NCBI GenBank assembly: GCA_002189035.1
Contig: CM007989.1
Span: forward strand, 4,278,001 to 4,342,000
Direction: 5' to 3'
Length of the DNA: 64,000 nucleotides
Source of the DNA: Utricularia gibba
Lineage: Eukaryota > Plantae > Magnoliophyta
This document shows positions 809 through 60,065 of the stretch, piece by piece (the first letter of the stretch is position 1; each line of letters starts with the position of its first letter). The position numbers and the translations under genes were made by a program. The notes under the pieces are model-generated. The model searched no databases. It was not told the origin of the DNA and saw only the letters and a program-made list of their open reading frames with translations.

Positions 809-2077
809 TCCGCAGACTATCCAAATCGGAAATCAAAGGCGTTTGTCCAAACAACCAGCCGCACTTTCGCCGCAAGGACAACTCTTCTCATTTCATCGAG
901 CGGTGCTACTGGCTCTGGCTTCTACCTTGGGGAACAAGACAGTGCTCAACATTCAACCCTGGCAACGGCTCGCGACCCGCGAACCCGGTTCAAAAATGGT
1001 TGTCAGAATTGAGAGAGACATCGTTGGCTCTCATCGAACCGGGTCTTGTCAAATCCACGATAACAAGACCCGAAAGCCGTTATTTGACCCATTTGGTTAC
1101 GCATCCACCAATTTGTACCACATTCAATTTGCATAAATTCATTTCTAATGAGTTTGGTATGCTATATTAAGTAGAAAATATTCATAAATATATACAAATT
1201 TTGGGGTTAGAATTGGAATTTGACATCTATTCTAGGATATACCAATCTCATTTTTCTTATAATTCATTTTACATTAAAAATAATGAATAAATAATTATAT
1301 TTTCATTTAATGAAATGTTCCGCATCCATATATTCTTAATCCATTTACGTATACCAATCAAAAAATTTCCCAAATATATATTTAAATCTCACAATATAAC
1401 GGGCCGTGATGGTTACTGGGCCGTGATCATGGGCTTGAATTAGTGAGCAAACAGCCCAACCAAAATTAGGATGCTACAACTTGAAGACGTGTGACTTTTA
1501 ATTTTAATTTGGATTTAATGTATGATTTCTTTTAATTTACTATTAAATTAATATTTTTTAATGCGAAAAACATTAATTAATAATATCAAGTGTAACAATC
1601 GAAAAAAATGTTTGATATGTAAAAATAGAAATAGAAACAATTTTTTTAAATAGATATAAATGAGAAAAAATATTTTAATATAGATATATTTAACTTTTAT
1701 CATCCACATACTTAAAAAATAAGTATGTGAGTGGTATATTCATACAAAATTGGCCTACATATACTATAATTAATATGTAAGTGATATTATCATGTAAACT
1801 AGTTAATTAAATAATGATTTATATATAAATTTGAATATAAATCTTATATACTATATATTACCAAACAACACTGCGAAACCCTCCATTTGAGCTACTAAGT
1901 GAGTGTGTAAATTGCTATAGAAACCAATAGTGTGGTTGTAGGAAGAGCATGAGTGAAACACGCAGGAGAATAGAGCAGTCTCATTATTGCCATTTGAGAT
2001 TTATTTTACATTACCACATATTACATCACAGATTACAGACAACGGCATCGGGGAGACTGGAGAGCGTTCCTCGTAAT

Positions 2078-2798
2078 CTAGGGCTTGGTTTGAGCTTCAG
2101 TGTCCTTCTGTCCATCTGCTCCTAGCCACCCATGGCCGCCGTGTCTGTGCCCGTGTCCGTATCTAGGCCAGTAGTGATCCTCAGCAGCGTCTCCGGCATC
2201 TTCTTGAGGTCCATCTGCTCCTAGCCACCCATGGCCGCCGTGTCTGTGCCCGTGTCCGTATCTAGGCCAGTAGTGATCCTCAGCAGCGTCTCCGGCATCT
2301 TCTTGAGGTCCATCTGCTCCTAGCCACCCATGGCCGCCGTGTCTGTGCCCGTGTCCGTATCTAGGCCAGTAGTGATCCTCAGCAGCGTCTCCGGCATCTT
2401 CTTGAGGTCCATCTGCTCCTAGCCACCCATGGCCGCCGTGTCTGTGCCCGTGTCCGTATCTAGGCCAGTAGTGATCCTCAACAGTATCTCCGGCATCTTC
2501 TTGAGGTCCATGTCCTCCATGCCACCCATGGCCACCGTGTCCGTACCGGGGTCTACGCCAGTAGAGATCCTCACCCACGCCTTGTGTGGCAGCTAGTAAA
2601 AACACCCCACAGAAAATAAATACACAATCCAGACGATGAGTTTAAGCACAAACTAGTTTCTCAGCAAGGAGGAAGCACAAGCATCCACTTACATGCATCG
2701 TCGCTCTTCTCAGCAAGATCTCTCGCAGCCACCTGCGAAGAAAGGAGAACCAGCGCAGCTAAGAAGAAACCGCACAAGAGAAGTGACTTAGAAGCCAT
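2078..2798 (-). CDS. Secreted Gly/His-rich repeat protein GRP-1 (206 aa), GRP-family signal peptide; exons 2693-2798 and 2078-2592
   Basis: Exon 1 encodes MASKSLLLCGFFLAALVLLSSQVAARDLAEKSDDA, a typical GRP (PF07172-type) leader. A 100-bp phase-1 GT-AG intron joins it in frame to the repeat ORF. TATAAATAG lies ~35 bp upstream of the ATG. Confidence 0.9.
2110..2510 (-). repeat. Coding tandem repeat, 99-bp unit x ~4 (33 aa: PQEDAGDAAEDHYWPRYGHGHRHGGHGWLGADG)
   Basis: Unit starts at 2110, 2209, 2308 and 2407 (exact 99-bp period); units are essentially identical in DNA. Confidence 0.95.
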
Positions 2799-2832
2799 TT
2801 TGGGGATGAAGATGGAGGAGAAACCCCTCACC

Positions 2833-2840
2833 TATTTATA
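2833..2840 (-). promoter_or_regulatory. TATA box of GRP-1
   Basis: TATAAATA on the minus strand, 35 nt upstream of the ATG at 2798; identical in GRP-2. Confidence 0.7.
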
Positions 2841-5339
2841 GGAGAACAACAGGGCATAAGTGTTGTTAATAGGGTATATTATTTAAACGTTGTTTTTAAA
2901 TACAAAATGTGTTTTAAAATTATTTGATATGAGAGTTTAAAATAAGTGGATTAAATTTTATTTGGAATAATTTTTTATTCTAAATAAGTATTACGAAATT
3001 AGTTTTATTGTAAAAAAAAAAACGATTGAATTTTATTTTAGAAACAAAATTAAAAATTAAAAATATTTTTTAATGATAAATTATTGACCACTATTTAAAT
3101 CGGTATACCAAATTTTGTTATTTTTAATTTTTATAAGAATTAAAAAGTGATTTTAATAACATATAAAATATGGATATGTATTAAATTTCTATTTTTTCTT
3201 GAAATATAAATAACTTCTTTTTTAAACAAAATTGTTTCATTCAAACAGTATATTGTTTATTATGTATAAATATCGGCTTGCTTGACATTTGGTATCAAAT
3301 CTTGATAATAATTTGGTTTGAATTTTCGAGAATGCATTTTCGCATCGTTTCGAATGTTACAAATCAAAGATTCATGAATTATCGTTGTCATAAGAAACAT
3401 ATTTAATTTATAGCTTACTACAAATTACATCTAATGAGACGTTTGATAGACGTGTTTAGATGTTTAAACATATGTGTATTGATAATAATGAATATTTAAT
3501 AATAATGATTTTTAATATATGAATGCTTTGTAAAACAATTGCAAAGTATTCCAAACTAAGTATTTCGAAATTCAACTTCTATATTAGTTCTGTCAATCAA
3601 ACCAAGTTTAATAAAAAGTTATAAATTGTCTTTTATCATCAATGTTTATAAACTATATATTTTATAAACACATATAGTAAGCTTAATAAAAGTTTGGGTA
3701 CATATGTTCAAAACCTATGTATCAACAATATATACTTATGTAAATATAAATAATTAAAATATATTATTAGTTAGATTATTGTACGGAACACCCCGTTACT
3801 ATGATTCGAATTGGTACTGATATCTCCCATATTCATTGCACCTGGACGCTTTCTAAGGTACTGCTTCTCATGATTGGCGCTCCGATTTCCTACGGTTCAT
3901 CGCACCCGGACGATTTCAGGAATCAACAAGCGTCCCATTTTTAACCGCATTCGGTATATAGTTTTATCTGCATTTTATTTTTCACAAAAGTAATATTATT
4001 GAATGATGTAGTAAGGCTGCTTTGACGTGTATTACATTAGATAAGATTTACATTTCCGCCCCAATCATATCATTTCGAGCTTGAAAGAACTTATAATTTT
4101 AGGCTGTAATTAATTTTATTGCATCAATGCAAGAATAAGAGAATACTCATAAGAAAATACAATGGCATGAAAATCTTTTACTTTGAAGAATTAAAAGATG
4201 AAATAAAATGATATTAATATAATAACATATTATCAATTTATAATTGAATATGAATGCAATCTATAATATAACTCAAATAATTCTAATTTTTAATTTAATC
4301 AAAATTTAATATAAACATTAATAATCATTTAGGAAATCATGGAATATAGAAATAATTGGAAGATAAAGATTAAAAAATCAGAAATAACATCTAGTATAAA
4401 AAAGTATACATTATTTTCTTTACTATATACTATATTGATTCTCTAGATAAAATTTTATCCATTAATCAGTACTTACTATAACTTTAATTTTTCATTACAC
4501 ATAACTAGGGTGGAGTGATGGAACATATTGTAGATCAAAAGGGGCTCAGCCCCCCCCCCCCCCCCTCTAATAATAGTTAATTTAAAAAACAGATGTATTT
4601 TTTAAAAAAATCATTAACAGTTGATTATAGCGATTGGATTAAATTGGAATCACTTCAAAATAAAATAAAATAATTATGATTTGATATTTTAGTTAAGAAA
4701 TTATTTTTTTACACTTTTATTTATTGATTTATTTATTTCGGGTGAATTTGGGATAACTATGCATGCATTAGTCAAAGAAGGCTGCCTCCATAGGAATGAA
4801 AGGGGCTGCTGAGCTACTCCACTAACCGAGTGGCTGCTGTTTTTTTTAAAAAAATTCAAGTAATAAATTCAAACTCAGGAATAGTTGTTGTCTGTCTGAT
4901 TGATAAGTCGAAAGGGAATATAAATTAATAGATAAATAATACTGTATTCTATTTCTGATTAAATCAAAAGCTCAACCGGTTCAAACCGTCCATTTTTTTT
5001 AAACCTTTGAATAATGTGAATAAATTTTCTAGAATGATCTTAAATAATTTCTATAAGATTATATTGTAAATTAAATATATATATTTTTTAAAAATAGAAG
5101 TAAATAGTGAGTTGAGTTAATTCTATTTAAATGTGGATGCTATATTTTTAGACAATAATATCCTTAAATTTAAAACTCAATTATTTTTATGCCCTTTTAA
5201 TTTTTTAATTATAATTAAAAAGTAAAATTAGTATTTTCTTTATTTCATCAATTTTCCTTAATTTAATGAAATATAATAATCAACAATCATTTTTCTTATA
5301 AAGACAAGTGTTAATTCTGTAAATGCATAGATCGGCTAG

Positions 5340-16107: not shown

Positions 16108-17456
16108 TGTTAAGTGTCATTTTCTTATTATTTCTTAGGTTGTTTTTATGTTTAAATGTGATTCGAAGTGTCTAATTAGGAGTCTATAATGTGAGATTTG
16201 GGTTTTTATCTAGTTTAGGGTAATTATCCTAAATCTTGTATTTTATCTATTAATTTTACTAGTTTTAATTGAGATTTTTCTAGAGGCGCACACGTGGCAG
16301 GAAGTGAGAGAAAGAGGGCATCAGATGGCGATAAATTGGATCTTCCTGAGCTGACATTCCCTTGATTTCCGGAAGACTGCAGATGCCTAATCATGAGCCT
16401 TGACGTGCGGAACACGAAAGTCTCTGGCAGGCGGCATCATTAGCGTACCAGTGTCAGACAGTGCTTGCAAGTCATCCCAAGTTCAACAGAATCATAGGGA
16501 CACGAAAGCTCAGACTCTCAATGAAGTTCAGTTTTGTTCAGACAAGTTTAGTTTTTTTTTCAGTTTAGTTTTCCCTTTTGTTTCTCTCTCTAGAGGAATT
16601 TTCCTCTAGCTTCTCTCTAGAACCTTGTTTGCGTTTCCTTTAGTTTGTATGACCGTTCGTGGCTAGAAGCTTCCGTTTCTGGGTTGGAACACCCCCAGAT
16701 CTATGTATCGTTAGCTTATCTTCACATTTTGTCTGAATCCGAACGGGTTTCGTATGTCTTCGCGCGACTATGTTGCAGTCTTTCTGTAACAGTCCCCTTG
16801 TTCAAGGTTCATGGTTAGCTGATCACTACCCACGGATTTTGGAGAGGAGCAAGGTGGAAAACACCAACTCGAGCCCTTTTGGCAGGAAGAAGACAACGTT
16901 TTGTCTGTAGCCATACTTCAGGATTAATGGACAGGTAGTGACCTCGTATATGAACTCATTGGGTCATTGGCAACACTCGGGCACACGCGCGCAATTCGGC
17001 CGTGAGGGTACGCTGGCAGGACCTCTTATTCTCACGTTCGTCCAAGGAGGAGCAACATCGGGCTATTCCTGTGCCTTCTTGCAAGAGAGTGTAAGGGAGG
17101 GTAGGCTATTCCTTACTCATATAACTGAGTACTCGAGAGGACCAGAGAAGAGTGAAGACGCAACGAACATAGCTGGACAGGATTCCAAACCCAGGAACAT
17201 TTACTTTATTTAAGGTTCATCGCTTACGCTTATTTCAGTTCTCTCTTCAAAACCCTCTAATTCCCTTACTCAAGCTTCATCACCAACGTTTCTCACACCT
17301 TTTACCTTCAAAACCGTTTACAAATCGTGACAGTTGTATTCGGGGTGCCTCACCTTTCACTCAAAAACAACTCCCTATGTTTGACACCCGTACTACGCTT
17401 TTGTGTTTTACGAGTTTTAAAGGTATTAAAATTTGTTGTGGAAACGACACGCATCA
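16108..17456 (+). mobile_element. Solo LTR, family D (Gypsy-type), in the RT of element A
   Basis: TGTTAAG...GCATCA ends with TSD AGGAC (16103-16107/17457-17461). The RT frame TIKD|LGPAHFFLG resumes after it. Confidence 0.9.
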
Positions 17457-18068
17457 AGGACCTCGGACCTGCACATTTTTTCCTTGGTGTTGTACTTATG
17501 TGCACTGATACAGGGTTGCATCCTTCTCAACAAAAGTACACACTGGACATTATACAAGGTGCTAAGTTGAGTGATTTGTAGGAGTACGAGGTCCTTGCAC
17601 TCTTGCCTTGTAACTTTAAATTTGCTGATGATAGTCTTCCCCTTCCTAGTCCTGAAGCTTATCGTGCCCTGATTGAGCAGTTACTATATCTCAGTTTTAC
17701 ATGCCCTGACATTGCCTTTCCGATTCAACAGCTTTCACAGTTCTTGCAACATCCCACTGAGGAACACATGTGCACTACCAAGTGTATTCTCGGCTATCTA
17801 TCATGTACCGCCTCTCATGGCCTTTTTTATCCTCTGAATGGGAATCTCACCCTCTCTGGATATTGTGATGCTGACTAGGGAGCATGCAATCTCACTCACA
17901 AGTCCGTCACTGGGTATTGCATGTTTCTGAGGGATCGACTGATTTCTTGAAAGACCAAGAAACAAGCCATGGCTTCTAAATCCTCCACAAAGGCAAAGTA
18001 TCAGAGCCTAGCTTCTGCCACCATTGAATTATTATGGATTTCCTATATATTGAAGGATCTGCAACAAC

Positions 18069-19010
18069 TAGTGGTTTAAAAGACAGACCATGTCGCACGG
18101 TCTGATCGGAAAAAATGGGAACCGGTGTCTGGATCGGTTCTGTTTCAATAATAGCTAGCAAATTAGGGCTTTTGTGACCATGTGGCAAAAAAGAAGTGGG
18201 ATTCTCTATTTCTACTCCTCTTTCTTTGGATTTGTGTAATCTTTGGTCCAATTCTTTTTTTGTGGTTTTCAACGAACAATCACAATGAATATTGATGCTT
18301 CTACAACTAGTATGAATTTTTTGGGTACTTCTTTTCGAATTTTTGTTTAAATGGTTGAACTTGAACCTTGTTAAGCTTTTGTTTATTTTAAGTAAATTAA
18401 TGTAAATACATTTCAGTTGTAGTTCCAATCTTGCGTTATTCCACTTTACATTAGCAATTTAGCATTAAATTTAGATTGCATCTGATTACTCTATGCGGTA
18501 TTTTTATTGATGATGGTTTAGTTATTTTTTTTTATTATTATTGTTGCAGAATGATTTTTTTGTTTGTGTATTTATGTTGGATGATTTTACTTAAGATTAT
18601 TGAATATGCTATAAGTTTATGTTTGGTGAAAAATTTTTGGACAAGTGAAGTAGTAGTGAGAAAGGTAAAACTTGAAATCGATAAGTTTTTATATGATTCA
18701 TGCATACCATTGAGTGTGGTCAAATTACGTTGTTTTCATACTATAATTGAAGATGCAATTAAACTAGGTCATGATTTCACAATGCCAAGTTATTATGAGG
18801 TATGGATTCCTTTTCTTAGAGATGCTAAGAGACAAATTGGATTAAGGATAGATAGTATTAAAACTTTGTGGGCAGAAACTAGTTGCACAATAATGGTAGA
18901 TGGATGTACTGATATGTCTCATAGAACTTTGATTAGCATTTTGATTTATTGTCGTCGTGGAACTGTCTTTTATCGCTCAATTGATGCTTTTAGCATTTCT
19001 AAGACTGCCT
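18069..19010 (+). mobile_element. hAT transposase fragment (DUF659-like) inside the RNaseH of element A
   Basis: Translation [43 protein letters not shown]. The left end TAGTGGTTTAAAAGAC...CCGG-rich resembles a hAT terminus; the right end and TSD were not found. Confidence 0.65.
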
Positions 19011-21063
19011 GCAAGTTGTTTTTCTTATTCGTGGGCAGAAACTGGTTGCTGCCAGCAACCCCTCACCACTCTGATCCCACTATTCTGTGACATCAAGTCA
19101 GCTATCTATCTCATCTCTAATCTTGTGTTTCACAAGCGCACGAAGCATATCGAAATAGACTGCCACCTCGTCCATGACCAGTACAAGAAGGGGTTCGTCA
19201 TGCCTTGCCCTATCTCTTCCTCCCAGCAATTGGCAGATGTCTTCACCAAATCTCTTAACATTATTCCTTTCCGAACCATCATGGAGAAGCTCAATTTGAG
19301 TCCTGCCCCTGTTTTGTCGCACCAGCCCAGCTCTTCAGACTTGGAACCAGACATGCAGCCGACAGTCCTCTGAGACTTGGGAGGGGTGGTAGGATGTTAA
19401 GAAAGCAGACTTGTATGCAGGTGCGTGCTTGATGTACTTGACGGTTATCACTGTCAAATACAGGTATAAGCTCAGCTATATTATCTGGACCGATGTATCT
19501 TTTTTGCTTTCAACGGAATCAATTACGATTTTAGTTCTCCTTTGTTTTCCCTTCTCGATTAGATTGTCGGTGCACTTTCGTATAGTGTGAAGAAGGAATT
19601 GATCCTAGCTCCACCCAAAATGATGAAGAAATGTGCAGAATTGAAGAATTGAGGAAGAAGGTGCGAGAGTCCGTGAAGCCGCTTAAGAAGAAGAAAGATG
19701 ATGGAGTTAAACCTCAACGTGTAGTGTTGGGTGTCTGTCAATACAAGTCTTTCTGGTGTGCGGCTAGCATCTATAGAGGCCCATTGGAGGAATAGCTCGA
19801 TGACAAACAAGTGTAGGTAACGTGAGGAAACAAGTCCTGAGAGATAAATTGCGTCTCTCCTCAATAATGAAGCAATTGAATTTCCCAACGGTAACTCCTC
19901 CAACAATCATAAGTTGAGTCTATAAATATTAGCATTCAACATACCTGTATGCAAGTTGAGAGACATAAAAGTTCTCATATTTTTTACAACCAGTCCTTAC
20001 ACTCACAAAAGATCTTCTTCCTCCCACTTACACTCGAAATGTATTTTCCAACATGGTGAATCCGATGTGAATCCAAAAAACCCCTATGCAACAAGTCTGA
20101 AACACTCACTCTGATCTACATTGCTTGGTTCTGACTTCATCTCTTACGTCCGCCTTGCAATCACCACTTTCGCTGACATGAGTGCATCAGAAGTTCCACT
20201 CGTGTTCGATGATCAAAACTACAGAGCGTGGGCCAAGCTCATGGAGGACTTCTTAGACCTCCATGATCTATGGTGTCTTCCAAGGAACCTACTACAACGA
20301 GCCAGAATCTGGTGAGTCCAAGAAATTGATCAACAGGGCCATGGTGATGCTAGGCAGAGCTGTTAGTGCTGAAATACACAAAAGAATATTCTTAAGCTCT
20401 GGACCCAGAGAAGCATGGAAAAAACACAAAGAAATCTATGGGAAGGACAAAAAATAAAGATCTCTAGGCTCTAGTGTTACTTCAAAAATCTCTCCTCTTC
20501 ATCAGGTATGTCTATCTCGCAATTTTAAGAACTAACCAACACTGTCTTGTAGCTGTAGCTCATGGGGGAAAAGATAGAAGATGACGGATCAAACGGAAAC
20601 TCATTAGTGAGGTACCTCTGCATATGCGGAGGTCATCTTCAACCTTCAAGCCAACAGAACATTGCACTCCATGTCCTTTGCAGAACTTCTAGACAGCCTG
20701 CAAAAAGAAGAGATAGAAAATCCAAATCCACTTGGACAACTAGTATCGCAAGATTTGGCATTTCAAGCCTCAGGGAATATGACCACTATGGGAACCGAGA
20801 GTGGATCAGTGACAACCAAGTCCGATCTAGCGGAATCCATATTTCAACAAAGCAGGCTAGAGAAATAGGGATCACTACCACACTGCACCTAATGTAAACA
20901 AAAGAATCACATCCCTTCGAAATGGTGCTGGCATTTAGAGGCCCTGTGTGGATATTGCAAGCTCATTGGGCATCTTCACAAAGTGTGTCCCTTGAGAAAA
21001 TATCACCAACTAGGAAGGAAATGAATTGAAGGGATTGAAAATGTAGTGCTCATGATCAACAAT

Positions 21064-41700: not shown

Positions 41701-44097
41701 AAGAAAGCCTTCTTTAATAGCAACCTTGATGAAGATATTTATATGGAACAGCCAGATGGCTTCATTGCCAAGGGGAAGGAACACATGGTGTGCATGTTAA
41801 ACCGAGCTCTATATGGTTTAAAGCAGTCTCCCCGATAGTGGTATAAAAGGTTTGCTATGTTCATGTTAAATCTTGGTTTCCAAAGAAGTGAGTATGACTT
41901 CTATCTATTTATTAAGGGCAACGTAAAGACTGTCTTCATTTTTCTAATGATTTACGTTGATGATATGCTCATAGTGTCAAATGATCTGAAATTGATTCAA
42001 AATCTAAAACAGCAACTAGCCAGTGAATTTGAAATGAAAGATCTGGGGGAAGCAAACAGAATGTTGGGAATAGATATATGTAGAGACAGGGTGAAGAAGA
42101 CTCTTCACCTCAATCAAGCAGCATATATCCAAAAGCTACTCGACGGGTTCAATATGAACAACAAAAAACCATTCATGATACCCCTAGCACAACATTTCAA
42201 ACTGACTATGGAGCAAACACCAAAAACTGATGAAGAGAGAAGACTGATGGAAGGTATACCTTAATCGAATGTTATGGGATCACTCATGTACTGTACGGTG
42301 TGCACCAAGCCAAAACTGTCTTATACAGTGAGTGTGATCAGTAGATTTATGGCTAACCCGGGAAAAACTCATTAGCAGGCTGTTAAATGAGTGCTACGTT
42401 ATCTAAGTGGAACTAGATTTCTTGGACTCAATTTTGGCTCTAAGACTTTAGAGGTGATTGGATTTTGTGATGCAGATTTTACAAGTGATATTGATCGCAG
42501 GAGATCCCTCACAGGTTATTTGTTTACATCAGCTGAAAGTGCCATTTCTTGGAAGGCGATGCAATAGCCAACAATCGCACTCTCAACCACTAAAGCTGAG
42601 TTTATGTCTTTAATCGAAGCTCTCAAGGAAGCCACGTGGCTGAAAGGTTTATTCACAAAAATTGGTTTATCAGAAGCAGTTACAAAAATAAGGTGTGATA
42701 GCCAGAGTGCCATTTTCTTGGCAAAAGAACCTTTCTTTCATAACAGAGTAAAGCATATCGACGTTTGTTACCACTTCATCAGAGAAATAGTGGAAAGCGG
42801 ATTTGTTATAGTGGAAAAGGTATCGTCTAAAAAAAATGTGACTGATAGTTTGATCAAGTCGTTGAGGTGTACTAGGTTCACAACTTTAATGAACCTAGTT
42901 GAATTGTGCAGGAAATAATGCATGGCAAGAACATGGAATGTGATCACTAAAGGAGAATACCCTTGAGAGCGAAGATGTTTTGACAACGGGATGAACTCCA
43001 GTCACAAGGAGAAGTTTGTTAATTATGACATGTGTTCTCATGTCTTATGGTTGAGCCAGTTACATCTATCTCTTGGGCTTAGGTAGAGATAGCCACCAGG
43101 CAGCCCAGTTGCGCATAGGGATGCACCTCAGTAAAGTCTAAACAGTAGGACTCTTATAGTAGGCAGTTGATGGTGTTGGACGGTGATGTTGAAACTGAGA
43201 AAAATCAGAAGCACCAGGGACCTGAGGCAGAACAGCGTGAGCCGAAGGGAAACGATGCGAGGGAGGAAAACTGTCGCAGAAAGCCCCTCACCAGAAATCA
43301 GAGGGAAAATACAGATACTGGACTTATTGTTATGGGCCCAATAAACAGTATACCAGATCACATATGGAAGCAGAAGTTCGTTGAGCCCTGCAATGTCCCA
43401 AGCCCAATCCAGTAGAGAGCATCCTCTCCCAGGAGATGACCGTTCTGCTGAAGGAGAACTGAAACAGAAATTCTCAAAGGATAAGATATCGCGAATCACA
43501 CAGCCTAACGGCTATTTTTCTGCTCTATAAATATGGCTTCGTTGTAAAGGAAAAATATGCTATTTTGTAGCTGAAAAACCTCAATACAATATCCAAAAAT
43601 CTCCAACAACAACATCCATTCCCAAACAGCAACATCAGCAAAAATATCCTGTCAACCTTCATTACCACATTGGAAATCATCTATTCTACCACTGACCCCA
43701 TTCAGACTTCCAATAGATGGAAGAAAGCAAGACGAAAAGGCAGAAGCCTTATCCCCTATATATATGCATACGTGTTCATCTTCTTCGCAGGGCTGAGCTA
43801 GCAGAAAAACTGTAACCTCATCGTTGATTTCCTCTAGTAAACAACGTTCCATTGCCCGCGGTTTTTCCCTTTGGGTTTCCACATAAATTCTATGTTGTTT
43901 TTACTTTCTTGCTCAAAACACACAAAACAGATTAAGAAACAGGAATGCAAACTAACGGTCAGTTTATAACACTTTCCAAATCGGAAATCAAAGGCGTTTG
44001 TCCAAACACGTGGCCGCACTTTCATCGCAATTATGACTCGTCTCATTTCATCGGGCGGTGCTACTAGCTTTGGCTTCTGCCTTGAGGAACAAGACAG

Positions 44098-44462
44098 CTA
44101 TGTTTTCAACCCAGAATTTTTCCATCACCCGGAAATCTTCTGGGTTCGGGTCAGCCTGGCTCAAACCGGTCAAACCCGATCAAATCCAGTCAAACACAAT
44201 CTACACAGTACAATAAGTAGTTTGGAATAGAAATGGAATGTTTAAGAAATTCATATTTGTTAAAATTATAGCTATTTCAAGAACCCATAGAACATGATTA
44301 TTTGATGTAATGAAGAGAGAAGAGAGGTAATTGAAAATTTGAAAGGAAAATAGATAATTAAATTTGAAGGATATCTAGTTTAGGGTTAACCGCCCCAGAA
44401 ATCTTCCGGGTGCGGGTAACCCGGGTCAACCTGGCCGATTCCCGGCTGTGTTGAAAACATAG
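44098..44462. mobile_element. 365-bp non-autonomous hAT-type MITE
   Basis: TIR CTATGTTTTCAAC(C/A)CAG and perfect 8-bp TSD CAAGACAG (44090-44097/44463-44470). The empty site, with a single CAAGACAG, is present in the paralogous copy at ~935-942. Confidence 0.92.
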
Positions 44463-45568
44463 CAAGACAGTGCTCAACATTCAACCCTAGCAATGGCTTG
44501 CGACCCACGAACCCGATTCAAAACTGGTTGTCAAACTTGAGACATCGTTGGCTCTCATCGACCCAGGCCTTGTCAAAAATACGAGAACAAGACCTGAAAG
44601 CCGTTATGTGACCCATTTGGTGATGCATCCACCAATTTGTACCACATGCAATTTGCATAAATTCATTTCTAATGTGTTTGATAGGTTATATTAAGTAGAA
44701 AATATAAATGAATATATAAAAAGTTTGGGGCTAGAATTGGAATTTGGCATCTATTCTAGGATATACCAATCTCATTTTCCTTATAATTCATTTTACATTA
44801 AAGATAATGAATAAATAATTATATTTTCATTTGATGTAATGTTCCGCATCCATACATTCTTAATCCATTTATGTATACCAATCAAAAAATTTCCCAAATA
44901 TATATTTAAATCTCAAAATCAAGCATATTAATTCATAGAAAAGAAATTAAATTAATATAACGGGCCGGGATGATTATTGGGCCGGGATCATGGGCTTGAA
45001 TTAGTGAGCAAACAGCCCAAAATGCGTCTAGGCATTCATTATACCCAATGAACACATTTGTTTATTGCCAACCAAAATTAGGATGCTACAACTTGAAGAT
45101 GTGTGACTTTAAATTTTAATTTGGATTTAACGTATGATTTTTTTAAGTTAGTATTAAATTAATATTTTTAATGCGAAAAACATTAATTAATTATAAAACA
45201 GAAAATGATGTCGTGAATTTAAATATGATTTTTCCCACTTGGTTTATCTTTATGGGTATGTCTGCTTTGGGAAAATTGCGACAAATGTTTTAATACGAAT
45301 ATTAGATTGGAAATAGATATATTTTAATGAAAAGTGTTCTAAAAATATGTTTTTTTGGTAAATTGAAATTAGGATAGGAAATATGTTGAATTCGACTATT
45401 GTTTTTTTAAAAAGAAATGATTATACCCTTTTTCAGAAAATATTGCAAACATCTATGTCTGATTTATTCAAATAACATGGATGGAAATTTACACGAGCAT
45501 ACCACGCATTCGAAACATGGATAAATTATTAAGCACAACTTGTGATGGAGACTGCTGTTCCGTACACT

Positions 45569-45962
45569 CTAGGGATCGACATCACGGCTCCCAAATCCGC
45601 CGCCGCGCCCATCTTCCCTGAGGATCTCAGTAGCGGCGGCAACAAGGGGGCCATGCCCACCACCATGCCCGCCGTGTCCGTACTTACCGTGTCCGTACCC
45701 GTACCTCCGCTCCGGCCCGCTGCCCTTTCCAAGGATGGCTAGCAAACCACAAAACCCAATCGTGAGTACTGAATTTTAGAGGAGCGGAGGCGCCACCCCG
45801 ATTACAACAACACTAATCTGAAACAGAGACATCACAGAAGTGCTTACACGCATCAGCCTCGCCGAGGAGTCCTCTGCCGGCAGCCATTTGTGAAGAAAAG
45901 AGAACCAGAGCAGCCAAGACGACGCCACGGAAGAGAAGCAGTAGTTTGGAGGAAGAACCCAT
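45569..45962 (-). CDS. Small secreted Gly/His-rich protein GRP-3 (94 aa), not in the ORF track; exons 45848-45962 and 45569-45738
   Basis: MGSSSKLLLLFRGVVLAALVLFSSQMAAGRGLLGEADA|SILGKGSGPERRYGYGHGKYGHGGHGGGHGPLVAAATEILREDGRGGGFGSRDVDP*. The 109-bp phase-1 intron (GTAAG...GCTAG) is at the same position as in GRP-1/2, and the 3' UTR shares the GGAAC..CAGTCTCC motif. Confidence 0.8.
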
Positions 45963-46829
45963 CCCGGGATTGGGATTGCCTGCCAGTCAATGGTTGCGGC
46001 TACGATTTTTATCCACGGAAAATCTGTCGTGGGGTGTGTGGCGGCTGGTCGTCGTCTCTTGTCCTTATCGGAATCATGACAATTACGTTTCGCCAAACCA
46101 AATAATTGCCGGATGTTGTCGGAATCGTGGATATACGAAACTTGGTCAAGCTTTGCGACTCGTCTTCTTTCTTTCTATTTATTTGCACGGTTATGATAAG
46201 TCCATACCACTGGAAACTTCAACAGGCATATTCCTATTTAAATATATTTGCACGGTTAGTATACTTAAATATATTGTAATTTGACATGTATATATTTAAT
46301 TATAAAGTATATAACAAATTACGTATTTGTTATACAAGAATAGAATGATGAGATGTAACAGTAAAAAAAGGTTTGATATATAAAAATAGAAATAGGAATA
46401 ATTTTTTAAATAGATATAAATAAAAAAATACATCTTGATATAGATATAATTAATCTGTCTCCTATTTGTTTATATCATACACAAAGTTAAAAAATGAGTA
46501 TGTGATTAGTATATTCATACAAAATTGACATATATATATACTATAATAAGTATGTAGGTGGTATAGTCATACAAGCTAGTTAATCAAATAATGATTTATA
46601 TATACTATTTTTAAACAACACTGCGGAAACCCTCCATTTGAGCTACTAAGTGAGTGTGTAAATTGCTGTAGAAACCAAATAGTGTGGTTGTAAGAGGAGC
46701 ATGAGTGAAACACGCGGGAGAATAGAGCAGTCTCATTATTGCCATTCGAGATTTATTTTACATTACCACATAGTACATCACAGTTTACAGACAATGGCAT
46801 CGGGGAGACTGGAGAGCGTTCCTCGTAAT

Positions 46830-47502
46830 CTAGGGCTTGGTTTGAGCTTCAGTGTCCCTCGGTCCGTGCCCTCCATGCCCACCGTGTCCGTACCAGGGTC
46901 TACGCCAGTAGTGATCCTCAACAGCATCTCCGGCATCTTCTTGAGCTCCATGTCCTCCACCCCACCCATGGTCGCGCCGGTGCTGGTATCTGGTGTAGTA
47001 ATTCTCAGCAGCATCTCCGGCATCTTCTTGAGCTCCATCTGCTACACGCCACCCACTGCCAGGGCGCCGCCGGTGGTATCCACCGGTGTAGTAATTCTCA
47101 ACAGTATCTCCGGCATCTTCTTGAGGTCCGTGTCCTCCATGGCCACCGTGCCCGCGCCAGTATCCACGGCGGTAGTAATCCTCAACAGCATCTCCGGCGT
47201 CTTCAGCATCTTCGTGAGGCCCGTGTCCTCCATGGCCACCGTGTCCGTACCGGGGTCTACGCCAGTAGAGATCCTCACCCACGCCTTGTGTGGCAGCTAG
47301 TAAAAGCACCCCACAGAAAATAAATATACATTCCAGACGATGAGTTTAAGCACAAACTAGTTTCTCAGCAAGGAGGAAGCACAAGCATCCACTTACATGC
47401 ATCGTCGCTCTTCTCAGCAAGATCTCTCGCAGCCACCTGCGAAGAAAGGAGAACCAGCGCAGCTAAGAAGAAACCGCACAAGAGAAGTGACTTAGAAGCC
47501 AT
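46830..47502 (-). CDS. Secreted Gly/His-rich repeat protein GRP-2 (190 aa); exons 47397-47502 and 46830-47296
   Basis: Exon 1 is identical to GRP-1, with a 100-bp phase-1 intron. Exon 2 has five different cores separated by G[PA][QH]EDAGD[AT][VA]E[DN]-type spacers and the same C-terminus DTEAQTKP. Confidence 0.9.
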
Positions 47503-47536
47503 TTTGGGGATGAAGATGGAGGAGAAACCCCTCACC

Positions 47537-47544
47537 TATTTATA
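47537..47544 (-). promoter_or_regulatory. TATA box of GRP-2
   Basis: TATAAATA on the minus strand, 35 nt upstream of the ATG at 47502. Confidence 0.7.
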
Positions 47545-50500
47545 GGAGAACAACAGGGCATAAGTGTTGTTAATAGGGTATATTATTTAAACGTTGTTTT
47601 TAAATACAAAATGTGTATTTTAAAATTATTTGATATCTGAGTTTAAAATAAGTGGATTTAAATTTTATTTGAACAATTTTTTATTCTAAATAAGTACTAC
47701 AAAATTACTTTTATTATTAAATATGATTGAATTTTATTTTAGAAAAAAAATAAATATTTAAAATATTTTGTAATGATACATTATTGACCACTTTTTAAAT
47801 CACTGTACCAAATTTTGTTATTTTTAATTTTATAAGAATTAAAAAGTGATTTTGATAACATATAAAATATGGATATGTATTGAATTTCTATTTTTTTCTT
47901 GAAATACAAATAACTTCTCTTTTAAACAAATTTTTTTCATTCAAACAGTATTGATTATTACATATAAATATTGGCTTGTTTGACATTTGGTATCAAATCT
48001 TCATAATAATTTGGTTTGAAATTTTGAGAATGCGTTTTCACATCATTTCGAATGTTACAAATCGGAGATTCATGAATTGTAGTCATCATAGGAAACATAT
48101 CTCATCTAGACCTTACTATAAATTATATCTAATGAGATGTTTGATAGATGTGTTTAGATTTTTAAACACATGCGTATTGATAATAATGAATACTTAATAA
48201 TAATGATTTTTAATGTATGAATATTTCGTAAAACAATTGTAAAGTATTCCAAACTAAGTATTTCGAAATTCAACTTCTATATTAGTTCTGTTAATCAAAC
48301 CAAGTTTAATAAGAAGTGATAAATTGTCTTTTATTATCAATGTTTATAAACTATATATTATAAACACACATACTAAGCTTAATAAAATTTTGGCTACATA
48401 TGTACAAAGCCTATGTATTAACAATATATAGTTATCTAAATATAAATAATTAAAATCCATTATTAGTTAAATTATAGTACGAACACCCCGTTACTACAAT
48501 TCCAATTGGTGATATCTTTTATGTTCATTGCACCTGGACGCTATCTAAGGTATTGCTTCTCATGATTGTCGTCCGATTTCCTACGGTTCATCGCACCTGG
48601 ACGATTTCAGGAATCAACAAGCGTCCTATTTATAACCGCATTCGGTATATAATTTTATCTGCATTTTTTTTCACAAAAGTAATATGTTTATCCATTTTTA
48701 TGACATAATTTTTTTTTAAGAATATACTTATTGAATGATCTAGTAAGACTGTTTTGTCGTGTATTGCATTAGATAAGAATGTCATTTTCACTCAAATCAT
48801 ATCATTTCGAGCTTGAAACAACTTATAATTTTAGCTTGTAATTAATTTTATTATCAAATATGATCGATTTTTATTATTAAAATGCTTATTATTTTTTAAA
48901 AACTATAAACCTATTTTCATCCATAATTAACTTAATTGAATCAATACAAGAATAAGAGAATACTCATAAAAAAGAAAATACAATGGCATGAAAATCTTTT
49001 ACTTTGAAGCAGTAAAAGATGAAATAAAACGGTATTAACATAATAATATATTATCAATTTATAATGGAATATGAATGCAATCTATAATATAAGTACTTAC
49101 TATAACTTTAATTTTGCATTCTAGGGTGGAGTGATGGAACATACTGTAGATCAAAAGGGGCTCAGCCCCCCCCCTAATAATTAATAGTTAATTAAAAAAA
49201 CAGATATACTTTTTAAAAAAATCATTAATAGTTGATTTATAGCGATTGGATTAAATTGGAATCACTTTAAAATAAAAATAAATGAATATGATTTAATTAC
49301 GATTTGATATTTTTAGTTTAAAAAATTACTTTTTTTTACTTTTATTTATTGATTTATTTATTTCGGTTGAATTTAGGATAACTATGCATGCATTAGTCAA
49401 AGAAGGCTGCCTCCAGAGGATTGAAAGGGGCAGCTGAACCACTCACCGTCCGAATGCATGTTGTTTTTTTAAAATTCAAGTAATAAATTCCAATTCAGGA
49501 ATCGTTACTGTCTGTCTGATTGATAAGTCGAAAGGGAATATAAATAAATAAATAATGATGTATTCTATTTCTGATTAAATCAAAAGCTCAAGAGGTTCAA
49601 ACCGTCCATTTTTCTAAACCTTTAAATAATTTTTATAAATTTTCTAGAATGGTTTTAAATAATTTCTATAAGAACATATTGTAAATTAAATATATTTTTT
49701 TAAAAAATAAAAGTAAATAGTGAGTTGAGTTGATTCGATTTAAATGTGGATGCTATATTTTTAGACAATATTATCCTTTAATTTAAAACTCAATTACTTT
49801 TATGCCCTTTAAATTTTTTAATTATAATTAAAAAGTAAAATTAGTATTTTCTTTTTTTCATCAATTTTCCTTAATTTAATGAAATATAATAGTCAACAAT
49901 CTACAAAGAAAGACCAAGAAAGTTGATGGTTGCTCTAGCTGTCAAGAGAGAAGTCCAAATGAGTAAATCTTGGTCCTAGGGTTTTGAAAAAGGAAAAAAA
50001 CATATATTTTTTAAGTTTAGATTAAAATAGTCTTTTTTAAATGATACAATTTTAAAACCATACAAGTAATTTACTAAATAAAATACATATAAAAATGAAA
50101 CATAATATTTAAATTCAGTAAAATACTATATTTAGCTATGTTAACTAATAAATAAGATAGATGAATATGTAATTATTAAAATAATATTTAATTAAAATAA
50201 TGTATTGTAATTAAATAAAAAAACATTTATTAAATCAGATTTTTTTTTTGCTTAAAGTAAATTCTAAATAAAAACGCACTTTATTAAAATGAAAACTCTT
50301 ATTAAAACCTATTAACGGGAATAGCAATAACACCGCAATGCACGGACACATGGGTGTAAAAATGTTAACTTGACCTGAAAAATGGACAGAAGTAAATCAG
50401 CCTGCACTGCATTGATAATAATATTAGTAGTAGGAGGAGATCAAAATAATAGATACTTGACGACCGCCGTTGTTGTCCGGCCACCGGAAACCAACGGTGG

Positions 50501-50587: not shown

Positions 50588-53322
50588 TCAGGCTCGAGGC
50601 ACTGATCTTGGCTTCCAAACTTGCCCCCCATGGCCTGATGGTGCCTGCTGAGACATAAATGCTGCCCCATTTGAACGTTCGTCGCTCCTAATTTGAGAAA
50701 TGGGCTGCCTTTTCAAGAAGGGAGGCTTCCTGTGCTGCCCAGTTGTCCCAACAGGTGTTCTTGCCAGATGCCGTGCTGTTGCGGCAACTGCTGGTTGGGG
50801 TATAACTGAGCGTGAAACTCGGGGCGCAAAAAGTGCAGGCAGGAGAGAAGCCTGAGTTGCGTTTGATGAGAAGAGTGCTGCTTGAGTTGCCCGGATTGCT
50901 TCCTGGACTTTCACCAGTTGATTGCTGGTAACCGCCTTGGCTGTATTGGCTGGCTGCTCAAATGGATCTTCTATCTAGTGTTGGTTAACAAGGAAAGCGG
51001 ATGAGTGATTCAACTTCAGCTTTGACATCAAAAGAAAGAGGAACTAAGGAAGCATGTAAACCTGGAATACATCCTTCAATCATGCTGCCTCACATACACA
51101 TGCAAATAAAAAGCAAAGAGATAGAGGAAGTGGGGATTACTAATAGTGCGTATGTTTTGGGTAGCCATGACATGTTGCTGCTGATGTCCTCCAACTCCCC
51201 ATCAAAAAGGCTGACGCCTTTGGTGGAAGCTTGGGAGAAGATGTGCGAGAGCTGCATGTAGAACAAGGCTATCTGTTGATAACATGTAAGAAGATTGAAA
51301 TAAACTTAGGGAATTCTCCCCCTTGGTTACTTACTAATCACAAGAACCTATTTATACAATGAAAGGCAAAAAGCAAAAAACAAATCTGCCACCCTAAATT
51401 TAGGCTACAAGAACAAGTAGTAACCCAGTACAAAGTTTGTCAACAAAAACAAAATATTTAATTCATTTGTCTTTTCCGGTAGTTGCTCAATTATTTCTTC
51501 AACATAACATATAGAAAAATTTAACTCCAGAATGACACGCAACAGTCGCACAAAGTACTGGAGAAAAACCTTTGGCAAAAAGGAGAGGAATAGTTCAGAT
51601 AAACTGTTTCTGTTCACCCTTCTAGGCTTATCCAACTTTATTCTCTTTATGTTTTCTGCGCAAACATCTTCAATGTGTTTTACAGCAACAGCCTTCACAC
51701 CTATAAGAATAACATACCACGGAAGATTGCGATTAACTGTAACAGGGTAAACACAATTTAATAAAAGAATATATGAAAAATCGCTATGTGATGAGCGACA
51801 CTCCATGCTTGAATCCTTCAATGCTTCAGATAAATATAGAGAAAAGTTCTATTGAGTACCTACGAGGGTCTCACACATGTTGAATGGAAATATATCCTTA
51901 AGAGGCGGAAGTATTGCAGGGACCAAAGTCTGAAAAAAGTATGCAAAACATACAAAGAAGACTTCAGTCTCCAAAGCGTTTGAAGAAGGAAATTGGTGTG
52001 ATACCCGAAATGTGTTATATCATCCTGAATTAAAGAGGTTCGGTTTAAAAACATAAACTATTACTTTTACATCCGCATTAAAGATATTCTAAACACCCCT
52101 GATCTTCCATATACTTGATCCTGTTCTCCTACCTCCTTTTAAATGAATATTTTCTCAGTTTTTTGTACTTCATCCTTGTCGGAACTGTTCTACACAAATT
52201 TCAATGAATCTATATGGAGATAGATGAAAAAAAAATCCTCAGACGAATAAAGAATAATGAATGACCCCACAAAAACATGCGATAAATTGATTTTAGGAGA
52301 GAAAAATGAATCAAATTTACCTGAAAATGGAAGATAACCAGAAGAGTAAGGGAGTACGAGTTGAAGCTTCCATTCTTCGGGTCATTTATTTTGTGAGCTT
52401 TAGCCCAATGTTTAACCTACGAAAAGAGGATCAAAGGATGAGTTTTTGTCATTTCATTTCAAAATTACTCGAACAAATTGTATAAACTTGCCAGTAAAAC
52501 GAGATCTCGAAAGCGTCCATCAATATCGTTGATCCAGTATAAAACAATAGACTTCATTTGACCAACCAAATTGTTTATTGATATGTCACAAGAAATGCTG
52601 TTGCACTGGAGCTTCAAAATGGGTACCCTAGCATTTAGAATTAACATAAACCTGTGAAATACTCCTGCCAGATGAAAATAGAAGAAAAAAAAAATATCAA
52701 AGCCAAAATCTAACAGATTCATATCCCTAATTGCCAACACCTTCATGTTGTAAAATCGGGAAAAAATAATAGAATCTGCGTGTAGTTTAAAGCAAAATCA
52801 GATTTCCATCTTATGCAAAAGAAAATATTGACTGCATGTACTCAGTAAGAAAATAAGAGAGACACGATCAAGATAACAGCTGAATAAGAACATTCTTGCC
52901 AACTGTTACCGTTAAGACAACCTTTTTTTCTCATAACCCTTTGTAGTTCTGCCAGCGAGCTTTGCTTGTGCTTTTTCCCTGGACACAAAATATATTCACC
53001 GTTTTTCAAATCGATGGATATATCCAAATCCCCGTCTTCTGAGAAAAGATTAGACACAAATGATCCAAATGGTTCCACCGTAGCACCTATTACAAAGTAA
53101 CTCTTCAATATGGATAAAACTATGAGCTCTGAACAGCATTTAATAAACACAAGAAGGATGCAACAAACCTCTCAAACTTTCCATAGACTCCACAACTGTA
53201 CGAATTTCCTGAATAACATGAAATCTCATGGCCCAATCATCTTTTGATGGATTGATGACACGAAGGACATCCTTTATGGTGATCTCTAAAAGCTGGTATC
53301 TATTACTCTCAGTGGTGGCCAT
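50588..53322 (-). CDS. HESO1: HEN1 suppressor 1, terminal uridylyltransferase (428 aa); exons 53169-53322, 52922-53086, 52492-52664, 52321-52416, 51860-51929, 51570-51700, 51141-51251, 50588-50974
   Basis: Phase-consistent splicing gives PFGSFVSNLFSEDGDLDIS, ARVPILK, SCDISINN, VKHWAKAHKINDPKNGSFNSYSL, WLPKTYALL|IEDPFEQPANTA and QVWKPR, all HESO1-family motifs. Confidence 0.92.
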
Positions 53323-58205: not shown

Positions 58206-60065
58206 ATGGCGAGCGGGTCCTCTACGCCCCATGTCCTCATCTTCCCTCTGCCTCTCCAGGGTCCCGTCAACTCTATGCTCAAACTCGCGGAAATCTTCTG
58301 CCTTAACCAAATCAATATCACGTTCCTCAACACCGACTACATTCAAAATCGCCTCACTTCTTGCACTGCCCCAGAAAAGTACTCCAACTTCCGCTTCCGT
58401 ACGCTTCCCGACGGCTTGCCGGAGAACACCCCAAGAACTGTTGAGCAAATTGGGGCGGTCATAAACTCACTTGCAGCAACTGGGGTTCCGCTTTTACGCC
58501 AGATTTTGAGCTGCACTGATTCGGGTGAAGGGATAACTTGCCTGATAGTGGATGGTGCATTCGCATTCGTAGCGGATGTTGCTAGAGAAATGGGTGTTCC
58601 TTTGTTGTTTTTCGATACGGTGAGTCCCTGTGCGTTTTGGACATATATGTGTCTGCCTAAGCTCATTGAATCTGGAGAGATTCCTTTCAAAGGTATTTTC
58701 TTGTTGTTTTTTTCATTCTTCATGTTATATGAAAGTTCTGTGATTGACATGGTTAACGGCAGAAATTGCCCTCCGGCTAAAGGGTTTTCGGAAAAACCAC
58801 TTGTTGAAGGAACCAAACACTACACCCTGTTTTCATTGAATTTTTTGCGTATGTTTGATTAGTAGAAGAATAGTAAGTGAATAGGAGGAGCAATATTGCC
58901 ATTCTTTCTCGCAATGTCAATAGAAAGATGTCCCCCTAATCCCTATGTAAATAGTAAGTGAATAGGAGGAGCAATATGATTTCTCCAACATGTGTTTTGG
59001 TTGTTTCAGATGACAATTTGGATGAGGTTTTAACAAGCATCACCGGAACCGGAGGCATCATTCGTCGTCGTGATCTGCCCGGCCTCTGTCGAACCGAGGA
59101 CCTGAATGATCCAACACTCCAACTGTTGCTCAAGGAAGTGAAGAGCATTCCTCTGGCTCAAGGGCTTATTTTCAACACATTTGAACAGCTTGAAGCTCCC
59201 ATCTTATCTGAAATACTCAGCATCAGTCCCAACATCTATGCCGTAGGACCTCTGCACACTCTCCTGAAAGCCCAGTTATCATCTCAGACCACCTCCTCGA
59301 ATAGCTTGTGGGAAGAAGATGAGAGCTGCGTGACTTGGCTGGATGCACAGCCTCCAAAATCTGTGGTCTACGTTAGCATTGGAAGCCTGGCTGTGATGAC
59401 CAAGGACCAGATGCTGGAAATTTGGCATGGTTTGGTGAACAGTGGCTCTAGATTTCTTTGGGCTCAGAGGCTCGATTCGATCATCGGATTCGACTATAGC
59501 TACGAGGGTCTGCCTGAATTGTTGGATAGCACGAAAGAGAGAGGGTATATCGTGAACTGGGTTCCTCAAGAAGAGGTCTTGGCTCATCCCTCCATTGCTT
59601 GCTTTCTCACACACAGCGGATGGAACTCCACACTGGAGAGCATTGCTGAAGGGAAACCAATGATCTGCTGGCCTCATCACTTCGATCAACAGGTTTTCTT
59701 TTTCCTCAAGCTGCTCATGTATACATATTCATGATCAAATCCGGTTTAGAACTTTGATCTTGCACAACGCCCCTCAAGAGCAGGTAACCAGCAGGTTCGT
59801 CGAAAAGGCGTGGAGACTTGGGGTAGACATGAAAGACACCTGTGACAGAGCCGTGGTTGAGAAGATGATCAGGGAGATGATGGATCCAAGCAATGAAGCC
59901 TACACCAAACGAGCCGACGAGATCGCCAAATGGGCCAAAGCAAGCATTACCAACGGCGGTTCCTCCTCCAACGACATGGCCCGCCTTATTGACGACATCA
60001 AGCTAATGAAGCTGAATGCAAAAGCAGACAATGCTTCACCCTCCGGTATGCAAACTCAGGCCTGA
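58206..60065 (+). CDS. UDP-glycosyltransferase, UGT709/7-deoxyloganetic acid glucosyltransferase-like (483 aa if spliced); exons 58206-58692, 59010-59692, 59784-60065
   Basis: N-terminus PHVLIFPLPLQGPVNSMLKLAE and complete PSPG box WVPQEEVLAHPSIACFLTHSGWNSTLESIAEGKPMICWPHHFDQ. Intron phases are consistent. Confidence 0.88.

Follow-up and report, generated by a model that had tools for sequence, protein, structure and literature searches.

The GRP-1 gene and its modular product

GRP-1 is an intact two-exon nuclear plant gene for a secreted, disordered, modular protein. It is located on the minus strand of the window (the whole stretch of 64,000 nucleotides from Utricularia gibba that was analysed), where it extends from ATG to stop over positions 2078..2798 and gives 206 codons once spliced; the start ATG is at 2798-2796 and the stop codon at 2080-2078, these window coordinates being exact. 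Exon 1 (2693..2798, minus strand) encodes a signal peptide and the first part of an acidic N-terminal pro-piece. It is separated by a phase 1 intron of 100 nt (2593..2692, minus strand, GTAAGT...TACTAG) from exon 2 (2078..2592, minus strand), which encodes the remaining pro-piece, five cores, four spacers, a tail and the stop. Splicing is needed because the exon 1 ORF meets a stop after ten intron codons and exon 2 lacks an ATG, and upon local translation and a frame check the exons were found to join in frame into 621 nt without an internal stop. A TATA-like box, CCTATAAATAGG, is present upstream of the ATG (2831..2842, minus strand) and an AATAAA poly(A) signal is found 73-78 nt past the stop (2000..2005, minus strand); the first is identical and the second conserved in the paralog GRP-2. 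Long plus-strand ORFs overlie the repeat regions, at 46701-47300 (199 residues, over GRP-2) and at 1949-2125. They were rejected as genes and are most likely antisense by-products of biased sequence and codon content; such antisense ORFs at GRP repeats could mislead prokaryote-style gene callers.

The product begins with a hydrophobic leader of 25 residues, followed by an acidic pro-piece of 19 residues, five cores with four spacers between them and a tail of 10 residues. In the translation, the leader is the predicted signal peptide (2724..2798, minus strand), which ends Val-Ala-Ala and whose cleavage site was placed by the (-3,-1) rule. The cores are basic, rich in Gly, His, Trp and Tyr, and 20-22 residues long; the spacers are acidic and 11 residues long. 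Core 1 (2507..2566, 20 residues, LYWRRPRY...) is as in GRP-2 except for a 9-bp insertion, and the 11 acidic residues of spacer 1 (2474..2506) end Val-Glu-Asp, with three bases that are unlike those of spacers 2-4. Core 2 (2408..2473, 22 residues, HYWPRY...GADG) has the same DNA as core 3 (2309..2374), core 4 (2210..2275) and core 5 (2111..2176), and spacer 2 (2375..2407, PQEDAGDAAED) the same DNA as spacer 3 (2276-2308) and spacer 4 (2177-2209), all on the minus strand. The start of the 10-residue C-terminal tail (2081..2110, minus strand) resembles a degenerate spacer. The tails of the two genes (2081-2110 and 46833-46862) open Gln-Lys-Asp-Thr-Glu-Ala or Pro-Arg-Asp-Thr-Glu-Ala, compared to Pro-Gln-Glu-Asp-Ala-Gly in the spacer, and the tail of GRP-1 and GRP-2 is probably a decayed last spacer.

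Over 2110-2541, Tandem Repeats Finder returned 4.4 copies of a unit with period 99, at 97% matches and free of indels. The units at 2110-2208, 2209-2307 and 2308-2406 are identical, and the unit at 2407-2505 departs at 3 bases, every one of them inside spacer 1; the perfect 99-bp periodic tract measures 371 bp, or 3.75 units (2110..2480, minus strand). The initial annotation had counted five cores in GRP-1, as in GRP-2, and had described cores 2-5 as DNA-identical at a 99-bp period. Both statements hold: five cores were counted in each translation, and the four 66-nt cores are one DNA sequence.

The exon-2 product contains 24% Gly, 14% His, 6% Trp and 6% Tyr and no Cys. The layout of secreted GRPs is present in GRP-1, with a hydrophobic leader and then a Gly-rich mature part (24% Gly), and so is the shepherin-type layout, with Cys-free Gly/His-rich segments behind a signal peptide. 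The computed charge of the amplified core is +5.7 at pH 5 and +1.2 at pH 7, and that of the spacers -4 to -5; the exon-2 product has a pI of 5.8, and its net charge, about +11 at pH 5, is reversed to about -13 at pH 7. Single-sequence AlphaFold2 gave the exon-2 product a mean pLDDT of 42.5 and no secondary structure; the product is predicted to be disordered, although on its own this is weak evidence. Tyrosine sulfation of GRP-1 was considered and rejected: the Asp-Tyr pair, which is the classic motif for this modification, is found in one GRP-2 core only and nowhere in GRP-1.

The window as a whole is rich in Copia and hAT debris and is plant nuclear DNA with a G+C content of 36%. When 40 window ORFs of at least 90 residues were searched against Pfam, only transposon domains, one UGT, a nucleotidyltransferase and DUF659 were found, and no BURP domain, legumain/AEP or other processing enzyme was seen among them. 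The UGT85-like glycosyltransferase (58206-59734, plus strand) consists of two ORFs separated by about 95 bp, either an intron or a break; the best matches of the second ORF come from Lamiales, at 64-70% identity, and carry the annotation 7-deoxyloganetic acid glucosyltransferase-like. At 52465-53150 (minus strand), two adjacent ORFs have matches to a nucleotidyltransferase domain and to the central palm domain of non-canonical poly(A) polymerases; they are probably parts of a multi-exon gene. An inverted repeat pair of 1.35 kb with 88.7% identity (16108-17457 and 22373-21063) flanks the DUF659 ORF at 18476-19090 and may represent the termini of a large DNA transposon.

The GRP-2 paralog and the history of the array

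A block of about 5 kb is present in the window as a direct duplicate (about 816-5288 and about 43971-49901, with 86-94% identity), and about 40 kb of transposon remains separate the two copies. The paralog GRP-2 (46830..47502, minus strand) has the same leader as GRP-1 and five cores that differ from each other. The right-hand duplicate carries an extra 1.16 kb (45196-46353) that the left copy lacks (junction at about 1585-1591). A single-core relative, GRP-3 (45569..45962, minus strand), is found in the right-hand duplicate only, and its intron has the position and the phase (1) of the intron in GRP-1.

The identity between GRP-1 and GRP-2 varies along the gene. It is 89% in the distal upstream region, 100% over the proximal promoter and 5'UTR (114 bp), 100% in exon 1, 97% in the intron, 100% between the beginning of exon 2 and the end of core 1, and 96% in the 3'UTR; the repeat region reaches only 76.5% and contains 48 gap columns. 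The initial annotation had treated leader, first core and C-terminus as common to both genes; this is correct for the leader, encoded by an exon 1 of identical DNA, and for the 8-residue C-terminus, but the first core of GRP-1 contains an insertion of 9 bp (3 residues). An uninterrupted stretch of 285 bp is identical in the two genes; it opens 114 bp ahead of the ATG and closes after two thirds of the intron. Next come three mismatches, still within the intron, and then 76 identical bases (2524-2912 compared with 47228-47612); beyond the identical stretch the genes differ by 4% in the 3'UTR and by 11% in the distal flanks. The 285-bp identity looks like a gene-conversion tract, or else like the result of very strong constraint that would include the intron and synonymous sites.

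Compared within and between the two genes, the DNA of the 11-residue spacers shows 88-97% identity and that of the cores 56-90%. This combination of conserved spacers and variable cores, as read from the two genes, is the one seen in multi-core precursors, where the recognition sequences are constant and the cores vary. The amplified core of GRP-1 has no close counterpart among the GRP-2 cores (at most 67% DNA identity), and its source unit would either have been lost from GRP-2 or be fast-changing.

The age of the amplified array was estimated relative to the gene duplication. At intron and 3'UTR sites, GRP-1 and GRP-2 differ at 12 of 318 positions (about 3.8%), so about 10 differences would be expected among the amplified units if these were as old as the gene duplication. 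None was found in 272 lag-99 comparisons, which places the origin, or the last homogenisation, of the array at a time well after the duplication. The view of a recent homogenisation, for which unequal crossing-over or slippage had been suggested, is supported by these figures as regards its age. The accompanying view of GRP-2 as a diversified set is likewise upheld: its cores, with pairwise DNA identities of 56-90%, are too divergent to post-date the duplication, and it follows that the diversified core set is probably ancestral and the GRP-1 state derived. The present configuration fits the amplification or replacement of one block-plus-spacer unit by unequal crossing-over or replication slippage.

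The beginning of the array was also considered. An origin of GRP-1 core 1 by simple merging of the ancestral cores 1 and 2 was rejected, as the DNA shows a simple 9-bp insertion. The spacer after core 1 in GRP-1 is 97% identical to the second spacer of GRP-2 and 74% identical to the first. These values hint at the possible loss of one ancestral unit from GRP-1, and because of this match it may be a coincidence that both genes have five cores.

Relatives and proposed processing of the product

Searches were made exon by exon. The Pfam GRP family PF07172 matched exon 1 over model positions 1-34 (E 6e-6, 27.2 bits), the score being under the 30-bit gathering cut-off because the query was the 35-residue exon only. 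Exon 2 gave no Pfam match, and word searches of protein databases gave no relatives of exon 2 of GRP-1; word searches with exon 2 of GRP-3 gave none either. An exhaustive profile search of 1.84 billion protein representatives with the alignment of the GRP-1 and GRP-2 second exons retrieved no true relative, and in the same set the mature region showed no sequence kinship to shepherin-type precursors. The sole profile match, a bacterial repeat protein of 1994 residues with a similar period, was set aside as spurious and without kinship. The repeat part found nothing in a metagenome contig scan, in the ESM Atlas or among PDB sequences, and NCBIfam returned sub-threshold collagen-like noise only. 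That relatives had been hidden by the HMMER composition filter was discounted by a local control, in which the query itself and its paralog were recovered with E below 1e-75 at the same database size. Full-text literature contained no occurrence of four short core motifs, and nothing relevant was found in the literature on Utricularia together with glycine-rich or secreted peptides. These blank searches say little on close relatives, as the GRP-1 and GRP-2 proteins themselves are absent from the databases and the lineage is poorly sampled.

Which product leaves the gene was assessed from its architecture and from analogy with described precursors. The reading that we favour, and to which we give about an even chance, is that GRP-1 is a shepherin-like polyprotein that would be cut after Asx before each core into linear peptides. 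In an acidic compartment, a VPE/legumain-type Asx-specific protease would cut after the Asp or Asn directly before every block, and the same protease would probably also cut at other Asp residues of the spacers. The linear His-rich peptides so released would carry about +6 at pH 5 and be nearly neutral at pH 7; they could be ligands of Zn, Cu or Ni and have a role in defence similar to that of shepherins, the acidic spacers serving to neutralise the basic blocks before release. GRP-1 would then deliver four copies of one peptide and GRP-2 five different peptides.

Support for release of linear peptides comes from the N-terminal boundary of the cores. In GRP-1 and GRP-2 all 10 cores begin with [L/H/Y]-Tyr, and all are directly preceded by Glu-Asp (8 cores) or Glu-Asn (2 cores), which makes plain Asx-specific cleavage at this boundary plausible and, on the evidence of these residues, better supported than the initial annotation had stated. 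At P1, VPE/legumain accepts Asn and Asp, and pumpkin PV100 is a single precursor that is cut by VPE into several products (PMC4390986). Shepherins are Gly/His-rich, Cys-free peptides released from one GRP-type precursor (PMC4695807), and the antifungal activity of shepherin I is switched on by Zn(II) (PMC10698721). Multi-core plant precursors are well documented, with three cores in Oak4 and five to eight in TIPTOP (PMC11253845).

Several observations count against cleavage into linear peptides. At the C-terminal boundary no conserved Asx is found among the seven distinct cores of the two genes; five of the seven end Gly-His-Gly, and most then continue with Pro/Ala-Gln. For this reason clean excision would need a second protease, or else a four-residue acidic tail would remain. 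The exchange of Asp for Asn, seen at 2 of the 10 sites, is a common conservative substitution, and at neutral pH the amplified core has only a small positive charge. VPE is found mainly in the vacuole, and GRP-1 showed no identifiable signal for sorting to that compartment. As the repeat part gave no relatives in the searches above, cross-species conservation is unusable as evidence for processing.

The closest competitor, a serious possibility that we nevertheless consider the less probable of the two, is that GRP-1 remains uncut as an intact secreted or wall GRP, a pH- and metal-responsive polyampholyte in which the repeat number would tune valency and not dose. The His/aromatic blocks and acidic linkers would drive self-association, cross-linking of the wall through Tyr, or metal buffering. 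The leader agrees with such a role, since it matches, just below the cut-off, PF07172, whose GRPs are classically wall or secreted proteins, as do the predicted disorder of the product, its change of charge between pH 5 and pH 7 at a pI of 5.8, its content of Tyr and Trp, and the lack of a conserved C-terminal cleavage motif. In contrast, strict spacers with Asx placed exactly before freely varying blocks are more typical of processed precursors, and structural GRPs usually consist of homogeneous Gly-X repeats.

It seems improbable that the repeat number and its perfect identity are an artefact of assembly or polishing, or that GRP-1 is a silent, recently rearranged and decaying copy. Perfectly identical tandem units do belong to a class of sequence that is prone to assembler and polishing errors. 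However, the array is shorter than 400 bp, far shorter than long reads, and we take this U. gibba assembly to be a long-read one; moreover, the frame is open across all copies, and from promoter and leader to splice sites and poly(A) signal each element is intact and agrees exactly or almost exactly with its GRP-2 counterpart.

The initial annotation had also raised the possibility of cyclisation, in which the amplified core ending Ala-Asp would be excised and joined head-to-tail by a ligase-type AEP into a cyclic peptide of 21 residues. There is an Asp-Gly bond near the end of this core and an Asp before its N-terminus, and AEPs accept Asp at P1; the proposal nevertheless fared badly and is now very hard to credit. 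The residue at P2', after Asp-Gly, is Pro, and OaAEP1b was seen to cyclise substrates in which P2' was Leu or Phe but not those in which it was His or Ala (PMC8209628). The incoming N-terminus is His-Tyr, which places Tyr at P2'', where butelase 1 favours Leu, Ile or Val (PMC8209628). Furthermore, of the 7 distinct cores just 2, the amplified one of GRP-1 and core 3 of GRP-2, contain Ala-Asp-Gly, which is therefore not a family feature; the ends would have to meet without the help of cysteines or of any predicted structure, and no AEP gene is present in the window ORFs scanned. Burpitide-like side-chain cross-linking at the starting Tyr/Trp of the blocks, by an enzyme that would be encoded elsewhere in the genome, is equally far-fetched: a conserved aromatic pair does start each block right after Asx, and split burpitide precursors have repeated cores between recognition sequences (PMC11253845), but the blocks are unlike known burpitide cores, and the 40 largest window ORFs include no gene for a BURP protein or another modifying enzyme.

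If the favoured reading is right and the blocks are released, GRP-1 would represent a Cys-free plant defence or metal-binding peptide system of unusual architecture. The pair would then constitute a natural experiment in which identical promoters and leaders drive four copies of one peptide or five different peptides; with it, dose and diversity in peptide defence could be compared directly, and the rate of turnover of tandem core arrays could be examined as well. If the protein stays uncut, GRP-1 would be a glycine-rich wall protein of an unusual, pH-switchable kind. A wider proposal, put forward tentatively and which we think somewhat doubtful, is that GRP-1, GRP-2 and GRP-3 form an undescribed family restricted to bladderworts or Lentibulariaceae, whose members would be Asx-processed multi-core precursors of linear, pH-switchable, metal-binding peptides rich in His, Trp and Tyr for the acidic trap or apoplast, amplification and diversification being two routes taken in one genome.

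Comparison with known precursors

Among AEP-cyclised multi-core precursors, Oak4/TIPTOP resemble GRP-1 in having repeated cores between conserved recognition sequences (PMC11253845). GRP-1 differs from them in that it lacks a conserved C-terminal Asx with small and hydrophobic residues behind it, an N-terminus of the Gly-Leu/Ile/Val type and a cystine knot. In pumpkin PV100, VPE cuts one precursor at several Asx bonds (PMC4390986), as would be the case in GRP-1, but PV100 is a seed vicilin that is unrelated to GRP-1 in sequence. The Ib-AMP polyprotein of Impatiens balsamina invites the same comparison because it yields several small basic peptides per transcript; the Ib-AMPs are Cys-stabilised, unlike the GRP-1 blocks, and the two are not related in sequence.

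Two further comparisons are with shepherins and with the GRPs themselves. Like GRP-1, shep-GRP of Capsella bursa-pastoris has a signal peptide and then Cys-free Gly/His-rich peptides in one precursor (PMC4695807). Shepherins are two peptides linked by a dipeptide, whereas GRP-1 has five blocks with acidic spacers of 11 residues; shepherins are also without the Trp and Arg content of GRP-1, and no sequence similarity between them was detected. GRPs of the PF07172 type share with GRP-1 the type of leader, judged by a match just below the Pfam cut-off, a single intron after the leader and a Gly-rich mature part (24% in GRP-1). They differ from it in their Gly-X runs, the place of which is taken in GRP-1 by basic His/Trp/Tyr blocks that alternate with acidic spacers. 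GRP-1 is a new architectural variant within the secreted GRPs and shepherin-like proteins.
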